A stretch of DNA of 63,870 nucleotides, the filler included, from Reticulomyxa filosa (taxonomy: Eukaryota > Protista > Foraminifera): NCBI GenBank assembly GCA_000512085.1. It is 21 parts of 21 records of this genome, joined end to end, with 100 filler letters (N's around TTAATTAATTAA, not from the genome) between each part and the next. Parts side by side here need not be neighbours in the genome. Positions count along the whole stretch, not along the records: positions 13,683 to 20,077 come from ASPP01021487.1; 20 more parts are not named here. The stretch is one strand, 5' to 3'. Both the position numbers and the translations under genes were made by a program. Every line of letters starts with the position of its first letter. Positions within the stretch are counted from its first letter, which is position 1. Below the pieces are notes generated by a model. The model ran no database searches, was not told the origin of the DNA, and saw nothing but the letters and a program-made list of their open reading frames with translations. Below, piece after piece: positions 13,683-20,077 of this stretch.

Positions 13683-16600
13683 AATGAAACATATTTTTAC
13701 CAATAATTAGAAAAAGAAAAAAAAGTGGAAGTTGGGATAATTAACAGGAATAAATTTGCAAGGTTATTGTAAAAACGAAGAATGTTTAGCAAGTAAGGCA
13801 AAGATTCCTGTATGGATCAATCTTAAATTTGGTGAGATTTCATTTGATTCCAATAAAATATCTTATAGTTGTCCTGATTGTAATCAATCCACAGTGACAT
13901 CATTAATTAAAGTACTTTTCTTTAATTCAGAATATTCCATTTTTGCAAGTGATGGATCGGCAAGTGAAAATGACCACAATTATCAACGTAGTTATCCAAT
14001 TCAATCAGGATTGAAATATACATTGAAAGCAAATAAAATCAGACAACATGCAAAAAGTATTGAAGATTTAAGAGACAGAAGTGAAAAGGCAATGATGAGT
14101 AACGATATTATCAACTTAGTTGCTGAATTACAAAAGTATTTGATTACAGTTGTGAAACCACCAAGTTTGAAAGGAAATGAAAGATTATTAGAAAAAATTA
14201 AGGCAGATTATAAAGATGATTTTAATCAAGCATTTGATGTTGGAAGATTTACAATATTATGTGATAATGAAATCAAATTGCAGACAGCAGTGACTGTAAT
14301 GAAGAAAGCAGAGCAATTTCATTTGATTGTATCTGAAGATAAAGATTTCTTTGATAGACTATCGAAAACGCATCATCGATTTCATAATATCAAATTGTAT
14401 GTTCCAATTTATGATGTTTATATTGAAATGCAAGCCACTTTAAAAAGATTTACAACATTAGAAACACATTCTGTGATTGAAAATCCGAAATTAAGTCATT
14501 TATTTTATGAATTGATTCGAGCATGGAAACCAAAAGATTCATCGAAAGAAGAGGAGTTAAAATACGCAAGTGATGAAACATTAACCAAAATCAATGATGT
14601 TATTTGTGAATGGATGGATGAAAAAGGAATACAAAAATTAGCGAATCGTTATAAATCATCTTTGGATATTGGAATATTGAAACCACCACAATTAAATGAA
14701 AAAAGTGAAATTGAAATTGACAATAATGTGCCATTAAAAATTACACAATTTACATATGAGCAACTTTGTAAATTCACGCCAGAGAAAGTAAAAGGGAAAG
14801 CAATTTATGTGCTCTTATATGATTATTATAAAAAATATATCATTGGAGATAAACATCCGGCAAGTTGTCATGATTTTGCGTTATTACTACAAGAATCTAC
14901 AAAACAAGAATTAGAAGAAGATGTGGCCATATCACAAGCACTTGAAACATATATTCCATTACAAGCCAATAATTATCCATATACTGATGGTGATGACCAT
15001 GAAAAACAAAAGACCTTTGATTGTCATCAACATGTCATTGAGTATTTACATAATCAAGAAGAAAAAAAAAGTGAACAAAAAGAAAAAAAAGTGATGATAA
15101 TTCAAGGTACATCAGGATCAGGGAAAAGTATATTCTGTCGTTATTTAGAAGAAGCATTATGGAATAATTATACATTTTGTTCAAAAAAGGCCATTCCTGT
15201 TTATATTTCTTTTGCAAAATTTTATAACAAACAAAATGAAAAAGATATTATTTTACAAGCATTACAAGGCAAACATATCAATAAACAAAGTATTGATGCA
15301 ATTCGTGAAAAAGTATCATTTGTGTTTATTATGGACGGATTTGATGAAATATTTGATGTTTATAGTCAAAATCATAATGACAATGAACAATATTTTTTTA
15401 ACCGTTTTCATTTGAATCAATGGAATGCAAAAGTAATTGTGACTTGTCGAAGCAAAGTATTAAAAGAAGGAGATATCAAAACCACTTTGATTGGTGAGAA
15501 TCAACATCATACATCAACCATGTATTTATGGCCATTTACAGCACGACAAATGCATATTTATATTGAAAAGTTTGCAGCAATGAAATCAAAAATTAATAAT
15601 AACAAAAAAGATAACAAAAAAGATGAAAATGGTAATTGGAATTCACAAAAATATGAAGAGACACTGAACAAGTATCCAAATTTACAAAAAATGGTGGAAG
15701 AGCCTTTTCTTCTTCAACTCATTTTGGATGTTTTGCCATTGTTGCAAAAAAATTACGGCACAAACACAAAGATTTCCAGAGCACAAGTATATGAAGTATT
15801 CAATGATCAATGGGTTGATGATCACGCACAAAAAATTATTTTTAAGCTAAAAGAGCTAAAAGTGCAAATGAACGTCAGTAAACTCAAATCAGTGTTCAAA
15901 CAATATTGCCTCGATTTAGGCCTTGACATGCTTCTTGAAGAAAACAAGTCATTACTGAATTGGACATGGATGATTCTCAAGATGAAACAAAAATATGAAT
16001 GTGGATAAATGGCAAAAGTATTTCAATGGAGATAGTGTTACCAGATATATATTAAGAAAAGTTGGTGATAACAAATATCAATTTCTGCACAAATCATGTC
16101 AAGAATATTTTGCTGCACAAAAAATTTTATTAAATATCATGTCATGGAATACTTGTGAGAATAATACAATTCATCAATTGTGCATTAATCAGAAATTGTT
16201 AAATGCAGAATTAAGTGTTATTCAATTTATAGCAGACAGGGTTGATGATCAATCACAACAACTTTCATATTTAAAACCTAAATTATTTCAAATCATACAA
16301 CTATCCAAAAATAATCCAAGCATATCAATTGCAGCAGCAAATGCAGCAACAATACTTAATACAGCAAATATTAGTATGAGTTATCAAAATTGGGACAATA
16401 TCTGTATACCACATGCAATATTGGACAGAGCATTTCTTGAAGGAACAACTTTCAAAGGAGCCATTTTAGATCATGTCAGTTTCTTTCAAGCTTCTCTTGC
16501 TAACACCAATTTCACAAATGCATCGACTAATTCAATCAACTTTGGTGAATATACATATTTTCAAGGACATTTAGGATCTGTTAATTCTGTTGGATTCTCT

Positions 16601-18667
16601 CCTGATGGCTCTAAACTTGTATCAGGCTCAGATGATAAAACCATTCGAATATGGGACATAACATCTGGAAAACAAATTCAATCATTAGAAGGACATTCAC
16701 ATCGTGTTAATTCTGTTGGATTCTCTCCTGATGGCTCTAAAATTGTATCAGGTTCAGAAGATAAAACCATTCGAATATGGGATGTGTCATCTGGAAAACA
16801 ACTTCAATTATTCCAAGGACATTTCAAATCTGTTATTTCTGTTGCATTATCTCCTGATGGCTCTAAGATTGTATCGGGATCATATGATCAAACCATTAGA
16901 ACATGGGATGTGTCATCTGGAAAACAAATGCTGTCATTGTCGGGAACTGCCCCTCGTGTTGCATTCTCCCCTGATGGTTCTAAAATTGTGGCGGGCTCAT
17001 TTTATGGATGGATTCAAATATGGGATGCATTATCTGGAAAAGAACTTCAATCATTCCAAGAACATGCAAGGTGTGTTAATTCTGTTCAATTCTCTCCTGA
17101 TGGCTCTAAAATTGTATCAGGTTCAGATGATAATATCATTCGAATATGGGATGTATTATCTGGAAAACAACTTCAATCATTCGAAGGGGATCCAACTGCT
17201 ATTCAGTCTGGTGTTGAGTCTGTTGCATTCTCTCCTGATGGCTCTAAAATTGTATCAGCATCACTTAATCAACCCGTTCAAATATGGGATGTATCATCTG
17301 GAAAAGAGCTTCAATCATTCGAAGGACATTCAAACATTGTTCATTCTGTTGGATTCTCTCCTGATGGCTCTAAAATTGTATCAGGAGCAGGTGACAGTAC
17401 CATTCGCATGTGGGATGTATCATCTGAAAAACAAATTCAAACATTTGAAGGACGTTTAGGTTCTGTTCATTCTGCTCGATTCTCTCCTGATGGCTCTAAG
17501 ATTGCATCAGTTTCAGATGATAATACCATTCGAATATGGGACGTAATATCTGGAAAACAAATTCAATCATTAGAAGAACATTCAAGCTCTGTTTATTCTG
17601 TTGGATTCTCTCCTGATGGCTCTAAAATTGTATCAGGTTCAGATGATAAAACCATTCGAATATGGGACATAACATCAGGAAAAGAACTTCAATCATTAGA
17701 AGGACATTCAAGGTCTGTTGGTTCTGTTGCATTCTCTCCTGATGGCTCTAAAATTGTATCAGGATCATACGATCAAACCGTTCGAATATGGGATGTATCA
17801 TCTGGAAAAGAACTTCAATCATTGAAAGGACATTCAGGTGATATTAGTTCTGTTGGATTCTCTCCTGATGGTTCTAAAATTGTATCAGGATCATATGATG
17901 CTACCATTCGAATATGGGATGTATCATCCGGAGAACAACTTCAATCATCGGAAACACATTCGGGTGCTGTTTATTCGATTGGAATTTCTCTTGATGGCTC
18001 CAAAATTGTATCAGGCTCATTTGATCGAACCGTTCGAATATGGGACGTATCATCTGGAAAACAACTTCAATTATTACAAGGTCATTCAGATCGTGTTCGT
18101 TCTGTTGCATTCTCTCCTGATGGCTCTACAATTGTATCAGGAGGATGGGATAGCATTCGAGTATGGGATGTGTCATCTGGAAAACAAGTTCAATTATTAG
18201 AAGGACATTCTTTTCATGTTTATTCTGTTGAATTCTCTCTTGATGGCTCCAAAATTGTATCAGGGTCGTATGATGGAACCATTCGAATATGGGATATATC
18301 ATTAAGAACACATCCCGATGCAACTCAGTATGTTCGACTTTCTCCAGATGGTTCTGAAATGGTTTCAAGTTTAGATGATAAAAGAAATGTATCGTTGAAT
18401 CAATCTCACAATGATGATATAAAATTATCTGAAAATTCTTGTGATGTCTACAACACGAAACTATCAGTTGATAAAAAACAATCAGAATTGAGTTTGGAAA
18501 ATGGAACCGTGTGTTTGCCGAATGATGATATACCGCATTGGAAATGTATTTTGCGTATCGGTAATGATGGTGTGGGTTTATCATTGAAAAACAGTATTTG
18601 GAAAGATGTAAAAGGTTTAACTCCAGCGCAGAAGTTGCTTGTGGAACAACGTGGTGGAACTTTTTAA
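13683..18667 (+). CDS. NLR-like STAND protein: Zn-ribbon / RelA-SpoT-like domain / NACHT / pentapeptide / 14x WD40 (5' truncated; split by two 1-nt shifts near 15940-15995)
   Basis: ORFs 13756-16008 and 15995-18667. Motifs: CKNEEC..CPDC; LKGNERLLEK..FDVGRFTI..KDFF..HHRFHN..IEMQ; Walker A GTSGSGKS (15106-15129); Walker B FIMDGFDE; PFLL; FLHKSCQEYFAA; pentapeptide AILDRAFLEGTTFKGAILDHVSF; and WD40 repeats. Confidence 0.9.
16555..18305 (+). repeat. Tandem array of 14 ~126-bp WD40-coding repeats with high DNA identity
   Basis: TTCTCTCCTGATGGCTCTAAAATTGTATCAGG and CGAATATGGGA recur every ~126 nt. There are 14 (F/L/I)S(P/L)DGS units plus a degenerate 15th. Confidence 0.93.
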
Positions 18668-19819
18668 ACATTATTTTGATTTTTTTTTTGTATTGGGGCT
18701 GTAAGCAAGTTTTTTTTGGAAATTATACTGCATCGGTATTGTAAATCTTTGATTTGATTTATAAGTACTTGCAATGGTTTTTTTTGACATCATAGAAATA
18801 TTCTTTTTGAATTGAAAACAAGCAATTTGAGAATTTTTAACCAAGAACGTATTCAATTCTTTTAAAAAAAAATATTTTTTTTTGTTGATTTAATTTTTCA
18901 TCAGCTTTTTTTGAATGGAAATAATCAAACCAAGTTTTTGATATATATTCTTCTATTGCCAAATGTTCAATATTTTTTGCAAACTCACCAACAAAATAAG
19001 TCTCTTGATAGAATGAAAAAAACAATTAAAATTTTCTATTTGCATTTTATCATGTAACGAATTGAAATTCTGTTGCTTGTGCCAAGTGTTAATAATCAAA
19101 CTATTTATTTGTAAACACAAACATTTTCAATTGTTAATATGATATATTCATATGTATTTCAGTCATTAACTGACAAACTATTTGACAAATAATCCTCTCA
19201 AGCAAGTTAATCATTCGAAAATGCCAAGAACCATAGAGAATGAGATTACAATATTTGGTATGAACATCAAAAAACCATTATACCATTGGATATGGACATT
19301 GATTTCAATGATGATTCATTTGGATTTCCAACTTGTAATGTTTCAATTTGTAATTGCTTATTGTCAAATAGCACAATCCTTCGATGCTCATAATCTAATG
19401 CCATTACATAATTTTTCCATTTTCCATTCTTCAACATATATACCGTCCTTGAAATTTATCTTGTTTGAACATTATAAAATATTTATGATATTTGTTATTT
19501 TTGTATTGATTGTTTGTGTTATCATAAAATAACAATACAAAATCACAATAATCATAGATAAGTTTCTGATAAATCCATTCTAATAACATTTCCACAACCA
19601 CATTAATTAAATATGACAATTTTGATAATCAATTATTATCAATTCTTTTTTGAAACCCAAATTGTTGTATAAACATTGATGCATTCGTGAGTTACTTATT
19701 TATATTATAAACAACAATAACAAAAAAATTTCAAAATATTTCGAAGACCACACAATATGCATCAATATATTACTTTGTTTGGACTGTTCAAATTTGCTTT
19801 TTAAGCTTAATAATTTATT

Positions 19820-20030
19820 TTATAATGACACCCATAATTGAATTGTTTTATCATAAGAAGATGATACGATAATATCACATCTGACGAAATATCATATTAT
19901 TTGAATGTCTTATCCGTTTTTTTATATTTCAATTCTTAATTTCACATCGAATAATCGAATTACACCATTTATGAAACACACTACAATAACTTGATTATCT
20001 GGAAATTGTTGCAAACTCTTTGGTATCACA
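19820..20030 (-). pseudogene. Degenerate WD40 gene remnant
   Basis: The minus strand reads FPDNQVIVVCFINGVIRLFDVK...IIVSSSYDKTIQLW, with stops and frameshifts. Confidence 0.5.
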
Positions 20031-20036
20031 TACTGA

Positions 20037-20077
20037 TACAGTAGATTGCAAAAAAAACTGCCATACCTAAATGGCAC
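20037..20077 (+). mobile_element. Tc1/mariner terminal inverted repeat (family A) at contig end
   Basis: TA+CAGTAGATTGCAAAAAAAACTGCCATACCTAAATGGCAC. It is near-identical to 54045-54088 and to the reverse complement of 2216-2255. Confidence 0.8.

Follow-up and report, generated by a model that had tools for sequence, protein, structure and literature searches.

What would a foraminiferan do with an alarmone synthetase placed at the head of an immune-type receptor? The question is raised by a gene of Reticulomyxa filosa that lies in the window analyzed here, meaning the whole stretch of 63,870 nucleotides (filler included) joined from 21 parts of assembly GCA_000512085.1. We focus on one of these parts, the 6395 bases at positions 13,683–20,077 (ASPP01021487.1, about 30% GC). 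Two long frames (13741–16005 and 15986–18664), searched stretch by stretch as separate frames since the gene is interrupted, encode in order a four-cysteine beta domain, a RelA/SpoT-like domain, a helical linker, a NACHT domain, a winged helix, pentapeptide repeats, 14 WD40 repeats, and a tail. Judged by sequence, the product is a NOD-like receptor (NLR)-like protein with an effector of the RelA/SpoT fold. It has the makeup of the NACHT clade of NLR/STAND proteins, namely a NACHT match above the Pfam gathering cut-off (with Walker A, Walker B, sensor, and winged-helix motifs all located), a superstructure-forming WD40 sensor C-terminal to it, and an effector domain at the N-terminus. One answer, to which we give slightly better than even chances, is that in Foraminifera and relatives a bacterial toxin of the (p)ppApp type was recruited independently as the chief effector of a large and diversifying set of NLRs, so that regulated death or non-self rejection is carried out by an active alarmone-type pyrophosphokinase, possibly with a new acceptor owing to its His-His loop.

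The original prediction placed a RelA/SpoT-like domain upstream of the NACHT, and both the fold and the quoted motifs hold up. The basic K..R...K (14161–14220), the Asp at 14236 (D-x-x-R), THHRFHN, E-x-Q, and the Walker A and B motifs are found where they had been read, and the fold is recovered by Pfam family matches, Foldseek, and VIA-align. The Pfam RelA_SpoT model (PF04607) matches the window copy weakly (E 0.021) and 16 of the 18 family members, at best with E 8.5e-7; paralogue P0001 passes the gathering cut-off (30.2 vs 27 bits). A profile of the family has a single match among PDB sequences, namely Tas1 (E 0.014), which ranks first in phmmer too. Using an AlphaFold model of the effector (predicted local distance difference test, pLDDT, 80.7), Foldseek places Tas1 first (E 2.4e-6), followed only by RelP, RelQ, SaEAS, Rel, and CapRel (E 1.3e-3 for the latter). 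RelA/SpoT-fold enzymes make up all of its top 50 matches, and the 31 at E<=0.001 are all RelA/SpoT homologues (RSH) or small alarmone synthetases (SAS). In VIA-align, Tas1 reaches Z 13.1 over 168 residues (root-mean-square deviation 3.2), with Rel next best (11.6), then SaEAS (10.5) and CapRel (9.8), and unrelated nucleotidyltransferases at 8.2 or below. Both sequence and model thus point to Tas1/Apk1 as the closest solved relative of the effector.

Does the domain still look like an enzyme, and which product would it make? The catalytic Asp and E-x-Q, whose conservation had been proposed as a check, are kept across about 47 aligned paralogues (some 95–96%). The same applies to the wider active site: K139 (45/47), R143 (41/45), and K147 (43/45) in Syn1, D161 (45/47) and R164 (44/47) in Syn2, E224 (45/47) and Q226 (46/48) in Syn4, and H248 are all conserved at 91–98%, with a few paralogues lacking the D or R of Syn2. 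Moreover, the family and the Tas1-like bacterial and phage proteins have K-x-x-x-R-x-x-x-K, Y-x-G-D, D-x-x-R-x-T, K-D-x-F, E-x-Q, and H-x-x-Y-E-x-x-R in common. As a side observation, the window copy encodes Asp at 14215–14217, in the Y-x-G-D motif, where 41 of 45 paralogues and Tas1 have Gly.

Apk enzymes are marked by the signatures R-Y-T, G-x-N, and Y-H, as opposed to A-V-R, S-x-H, and I-R in RSH enzymes (PMC12226406). The family has R-F-T, F-H-N, and, after E-x-Q, A-T at these sites. R-F-T and the terminal Asn fit the Apk type, whereas F-H-N is not G-x-N and A-T is not Y-H; all three (p)ppGpp-type signatures (A-V-R in Syn2, S-x-H in Syn3, I-R in Syn4) are missing. Taken together, the signatures of Syn1, Syn2, Syn3, and Syn5 lean to the Apk type rather than to the (p)ppGpp type. 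Among the products first suggested, (p)ppApp is therefore favored over (p)ppGpp or a tRNA target by the closeness to Tas1/Apk1 and by the Apk-type motifs. Even so, we see about equal chances for and against the effector making (p)ppApp from ATP within the receptor mechanism proposed below.

Several points weigh against that product. About 80% of copies have His where RSH enzymes have the acceptor-stacking Tyr, which leaves the product uncertain, and the preceding Gly is His as well. The G-loop is also the least confident part of the AlphaFold model (pLDDT <50). In addition, the product is not settled by motifs, since motif swaps failed to convert the specificity of Apk2 (PMC12226406) and both alarmones are made by SaEAS (PMC12691689). 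The Tyr-to-His replacement had been noticed in the window copy; it is real but not private to that copy. The Gly-Tyr pair of the RSH superfamily is replaced by H-H in the window copy and in 64 of the 78 homologues and by H-Y in 12 (two have another residue), which makes it a family trait. For comparison, in RSH enzymes this Tyr of the G-loop is stacked on the acceptor base, and FaRel2 is impaired when Phe takes its place (PMC11782079). In a quick tree (built without reference RSH enzymes and fungal domains), the His form occurs in the deepest-branching homologues and the Tyr form is scattered; the ancestral residue of the family appears to be His. An alternative register of the loop, with H210 as the His of S-L-H, was rejected, as it breaks both the hydrophobic alternation of the strand and the Tas1-like alignment.

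The loop could also be read as a sign of another chemistry. The receptor would then be the same, and the remodeled T-H-H-R-F-H-N loop would pick another acceptor (tRNA 3' ends, a nucleotide, or a cofactor), resulting in translation arrest or a new signaling nucleotide. We consider this rather unlikely, although it has real attractions: the altered loop is strongly conserved, even in environmental homologues of only 35% identity, which points to selection for a changed function, its His looks ancestral, and CapRel, which targets tRNA like FaRel2, is among the structural matches. On the other hand, Tas1 scores clearly above CapRel in both VIA-align and Foldseek, and the scattered Tyr suggests that His and Tyr are interchangeable for one function. 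It is less probable again that the domain makes (p)ppGpp, or both alarmones, as do the housekeeping SAS or SaEAS. RelP, RelQ, Rel, and SaEAS are all strong structural matches (Z 10.3–11.6), and SaEAS, despite its Apk1-like fold, prefers guanylates (PMC12691689); the family, however, lacks not only the S-x-H and I-R of RSH enzymes but also their R-x-K-x-x-x-S in Syn1.

How large and how old is this family? Among 53 homologues of the N-terminal 400 residues, 51 are named R. filosa proteins (up to 79% identity), one is the annotated protein of this very gene, and one is environmental. The domain profile matches 130 fetched proteins, of which 61, nearly all from R. filosa, span Syn1–Syn4 in one stretch. 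Most of the 130 are distinct copies, since the protein database was clustered at 90% identity; many annotated copies are fragments. The ratio of nonsynonymous to synonymous substitution rates (dN/dS) between pairs of R. filosa loci is 0.03–0.16 at dS of about 1–3, so these are old duplicates under purifying selection. This bears on whether the domain could be a pseudo-enzyme that has no catalytic role and instead binds ATP or an alarmone or acts as a scaffold or decoy, with signaling via the Cys domain or partners. Such a role would fit the loss of the G-Y pair in most copies and of the Syn2 D or R in a few, but the donor-site and metal-binding K, R, K, D, R, E, Q, and H have been kept in duplicates old enough for saturated synonymous sites. 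We find it slightly harder to credit than (p)ppGpp synthesis.

Outside R. filosa, the effector family is present in three environmental eukaryotes, L002 (55% identity to P0054), L001 (36%), and L005/L006 (35%), the last with Cys domain, effector, and NACHT P-loop in one frame. L005:786-2505 and L006 (SRR7467839 / JGI 3300022690) contain two in-frame TAG codons where their kin have Leu or Met, and L001 (ERZ27276640) has one at 1473-1475, beyond which homology goes on toward the NACHT; none has an in-frame TAA or TGA. These may mark hosts that read UAG as an amino acid, but three codons are too few to conclude this. A rhizarian with altered UAG is described in PMC5304391. In another layout (P0042, L012:4946-7999), some 600 residues with a VCBS-repeat annotation precede the Cys domain and effector, and the contig has no NACHT; it may be that the effector module is shuffled onto other sensors. 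In the ESM Atlas, uncharacterized clusters from giant viruses (Nucleocytoviricota) and eukaryotes, including diatoms, have the effector fold (TM 0.63–0.69) and are possibly further eukaryotic or viral Apk-like enzymes.

As to origin, a phmmer scan of 1.84 billion representatives gave no protein identified as fungal at E<=0.001, and the distant matches that were checked, a polymorphic protein with an extracellular contractile injection system (eCIS) core from bacteria and a phage protein, are both Tas1-like. The family profile found no relative in metagenome and prokaryote (bacterial and archaeal) genomes and, in a viral scan, only a phage contig already found. Likewise, tblastn had no match in phage and plasmid records, and PADLOC (no model matched), NCBIfam, and PHROG searches gave nothing useful. 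Because the nearest distant matches are Tas1-like bacterial and phage proteins and none was identified as fungal, the data suggest, but do not prove, acquisition from bacterial Apk-like toxins, independently of fungi. On one phage-like contig (P0097, L003:5001-5939), a domain similar to Tas1 (E 1e-8 to 6OX6) is encoded close to a MuF-like gene, making this a candidate Apk2-like toxin locus.

The window copy had been read as one open reading frame (13756–18667), which it is not. Comparison with paralogues reveals frame switches near 13743, 15943, and 15991, and the TTG at 13756 is not a start: coding runs on upstream in another frame, and the true start codon may lie at or beyond the left edge of the piece. 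Nevertheless, 755 and 893 codons are free of in-frame stops in DNA of 70% AT, compared with 48 and 97 stops per 749 codons in the two other frames of the first part. The terminal branch of this copy is 0.22 against a family median of 0.2 (quick tree), and its dN/dS versus other R. filosa paralogues is 0.09–0.16. Breaks 2 and 3 adjoin runs of 4 and 5 A, which 31% and 14% of background positions reach, so that homopolymer context speaks only weakly for sequencing error. Frame switches occur in the four long paralogue loci examined as well, each at other places. Paralogue L008 has a single open frame of 1252 codons from Cys domain through effector and NACHT into the WD40 repeats, and the domain architecture is therefore real. 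The three breaks are more likely an assembly error or a very recent loss than old decay.

The sensor evolves quite differently from the enzyme. The in-register WD40 repeats of the window gene have 81% DNA identity among themselves and 61–68% to those of other paralogues, a sign of concerted evolution. The most variable repeat positions are 5, 6, 7, 9, 25, and 27. In HET-E/HET-D of Podospora anserina, positions 10, 11, 12, 14, 30, and 32 are under diversifying selection (PMC12222747), and the offset of 5 between the two numberings was fixed by site spacing. With the seven HET-E/HET-D sites taken a priori, dN/dS is 3.5 compared with 0.59 elsewhere in the repeats, a value to be taken as indicative because repeats within one gene are not independent; 20000 sets of seven sites drawn at random all stay below it. 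The same enrichment is seen in three paralogues, where it is partly saturated. Purifying selection on the enzyme thus stands against diversifying selection on the sensor. The pattern is the one expected of a receptor in which selection favors novel binding specificities, and its match to fungal allorecognition NLRs supports the immune or self/non-self role proposed at the outset. That the family is not immune at all, being selfish or decaying repeats or bacterial contamination of the assembly, is very improbable: every full-length locus examined switches frame and many copies are fragmentary, but dN/dS is low, the open stretches are long, the WD40 sites diversify, the paralogue loci adjoin eukaryotic genes (clathrin light chain, G-alpha), and bacterial or archaeal genomes and phage or plasmid records hold no relative.

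STAND proteins work by ligand binding, nucleotide exchange, and oligomerization. Reticulomyxa is a multinucleate network, in which local death would be comparable to fungal heterokaryon incompatibility. In the mechanism that we propose, the gene would belong to a large Reticulomyxa family of NLR-type (STAND) receptors for non-self. Its double WD40 propeller would bind a foreign or allelically mismatched molecule by its variable face, as the selection pattern suggests, and the NACHT, as in other STAND proteins, would swap its nucleotide and oligomerize. Oligomerization would release or cluster the Tas1/Apk1-like domain, which, by homology to Tas1/Apk, is expected to move pyrophosphate from ATP to the 3'-OH of adenosine nucleotides, forming (p)ppApp and depleting ATP. 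The affected part of the network would then be killed or sealed off, in keeping with the lifestyle of the organism and its HNWD-like sensor.

Features of the R. filosa gene (positions along the window)
Feature	Position	Strand	Basis or remark
Upstream coding stretch in another frame, start of Cys domain	13707–13742	+	Three-frame translation vs paralogue N-termini
Frame break 1, approximate (near 13743)	13740–13746	+	Longest base run nearby is 2
Four-cysteine beta-sandwich, probable Zn site	13741–14049	+	Cys codons 13768, 13783, 13870, 13879
Tas1/Apk1-like RelA/SpoT pyrophosphokinase domain (predicted effector)	14041–14640	+	Profile, Foldseek, VIA-align, Pfam
Syn1 basic motif K139, R143, K147 (ATP donor phosphates), Apk-type spacing	14170–14196	+	Paralogue and Tas1 alignment
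Syn2, catalytic Asp161 and R-F-T (Apk-type, RYT-like)	14236–14253	+	Paralogue alignment; PMC12226406
Syn3/G-loop THHRFHN, H-H for G-Y, terminal Asn as in Apk enzymes	14368–14388	+	Alignments
Syn4 E-x-Q	14425–14433	+	Paralogue alignment
Syn5 helix H-x-x-Y-E-x-x-R-x-W, as in Tas1	14497–14526	+	Alignments
NACHT NTPase core (Walker A 15106–15129, Walker B 15325–15348)	15091–15570	+	Pfam NACHT E 1.6e-9
Frame breaks 2 (~15943) and 3 (~15991), short third-frame stretch between	15940–15995	+	Adjoin runs of 4 and 5 A
Winged-helix and helical domains of NACHT module (FLHKS motif 16082–16096)	15996–16411	+	tblastn vs paralogues
Pentapeptide repeats	16412–16513	+	Pfam PF00805 E 1.7e-6; also in paralogue P0054
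14 WD40 repeats of 126 bp each, two seven-blade propellers	16559–18304	+	Internally homogenized, hypervariable ligand-face sites
Conserved C-terminal tail and stop codon	18539–18667	+	Common to all four paralogue loci examined

The domain list of the original prediction was incomplete, as it missed the N-terminal four-cysteine domain, the pentapeptide repeats, and the conserved C-terminal tail, which ends in Q-R-G-G-x-F. Counting both frames, the Cys domain spans about 13707–14049. Its four cysteines are near-invariant among paralogues, and a paralogue model (pLDDT 89) is an all-beta sandwich, for which a search of PDB structures gave no clear match (best Z 5.2). Look-alikes exist in rotifers and euglenozoans, with weaker ones fused to ubiquitin, and in paralogue P0001 (L010:814-3897) the Cys domain is duplicated upstream of the effector. 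Speculatively, this domain might restrain the enzyme beside whose active site it lies, or sense an input; a restraining role would be akin to that of the zinc-finger-like antitoxin domain of CapRel, which is only an analogy. The NACHT-pentapeptide-WD40 layout is reminiscent of that of proteins from cyanobacteria, Mortierella fungi, and their Mycoavidus endosymbionts. Elsewhere in the piece, a 62-codon open stretch on the minus strand (19270–19455, without a Pfam match) looks like a fragment of another gene.

How does the protein relate to known systems? The best match in both sequence and structure, with shared Syn motifs, is with Tas1/Apk1 (the type VI effector of Pseudomonas aeruginosa, PDB 6OX6) and phage Apk2. 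Apk1 is defined by an N-terminal PAAR domain and Apk2 by a MuF delivery domain, with an adjacent immunity gene (PMC10083569). The R. filosa protein, in contrast, is eukaryotic, intracellular, and built on an NLR chassis, with the Cys domain and NACHT in place of a PAAR or MuF delivery domain. It is only about 20% identical, its acceptor loop has H-H (or H-Y) instead of G-Y, and no adjacent Tis1/IapK or Aph1 gene was seen in the piece, though no search aimed at a hydrolase or immunity partner was made. The effector is thus predicted to work like an Apk enzyme without being a member of Apk1 or Apk2.

Fungi offer a close architectural parallel. As had been expected, RelA_SpoT domains do occur in some fungal NLRs: PMC4986451 (Dyrka 2014) and PMC12258605 (a survey of Sordariales) list RelA_SpoT-NACHT-WD40 proteins, with the same domain order as the R. 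filosa protein. According to these papers, they are rare (<1% of annotated N-termini; about 17 in 82 Sordariales genomes) and labeled as ppGpp synthesis, whereas R. filosa has dozens in one genome, with an extra Cys4 domain and pentapeptide repeats. HET-E/HET-D (HNWD) of Podospora share with the R. filosa gene the NACHT, homogenized WD40 repeats (>80% identity in HET), the spacing of hypervariable sites, and the double propeller (PMC12222747). Their effector, on the other hand, is a HET (TIR-like) domain, for which the R. filosa protein, with its Apk-like pyrophosphokinase domain, has no Pfam match. In bacteria, alarmone synthetases are listed among the NACHT antiphage effectors in bioRxiv 10.1101/2022.07.19.500537. 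Both these proteins and CapRel couple an alarmone-synthetase fold to a sensor for defense, as the R. filosa protein appears to do, but CapRel is a fused toxin-antitoxin without a STAND domain that targets tRNA, and the host here is a eukaryote.

In short, the RelA_SpoT-NACHT-WD40 kind of architecture is already known from fungi and bacteria. New, as far as searched, are its occurrence in Rhizaria, the Apk-like clade, the His-His loop, the Cys domain, and the scale of expansion. Our literature search, with some sources accessible in part, found no functional test of a eukaryotic NLR with an alarmone-synthetase effector, and it found (p)ppApp synthesis only from bacteria and phages. The original prediction knew of no description in foraminifera, and we likewise found no paper linking Reticulomyxa to NACHT or RelA in a search that did not cover the genome paper itself.

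With some 60 or more copies, conserved catalytic residues, and sensor sites that evolve as in fungal allorecognition receptors, the family makes it possible to test whether alarmone synthesis that drains ATP serves eukaryotes as a means of cell death, as well as how self is distinguished from non-self or parasites in a multinucleate protist network that fuses. Furthermore, the conserved His-His loop is a natural probe of RSH substrate choice, which motif swaps failed to explain. If true, our reading would give a protist a previously undescribed way to kill parts of itself on meeting foreign material.

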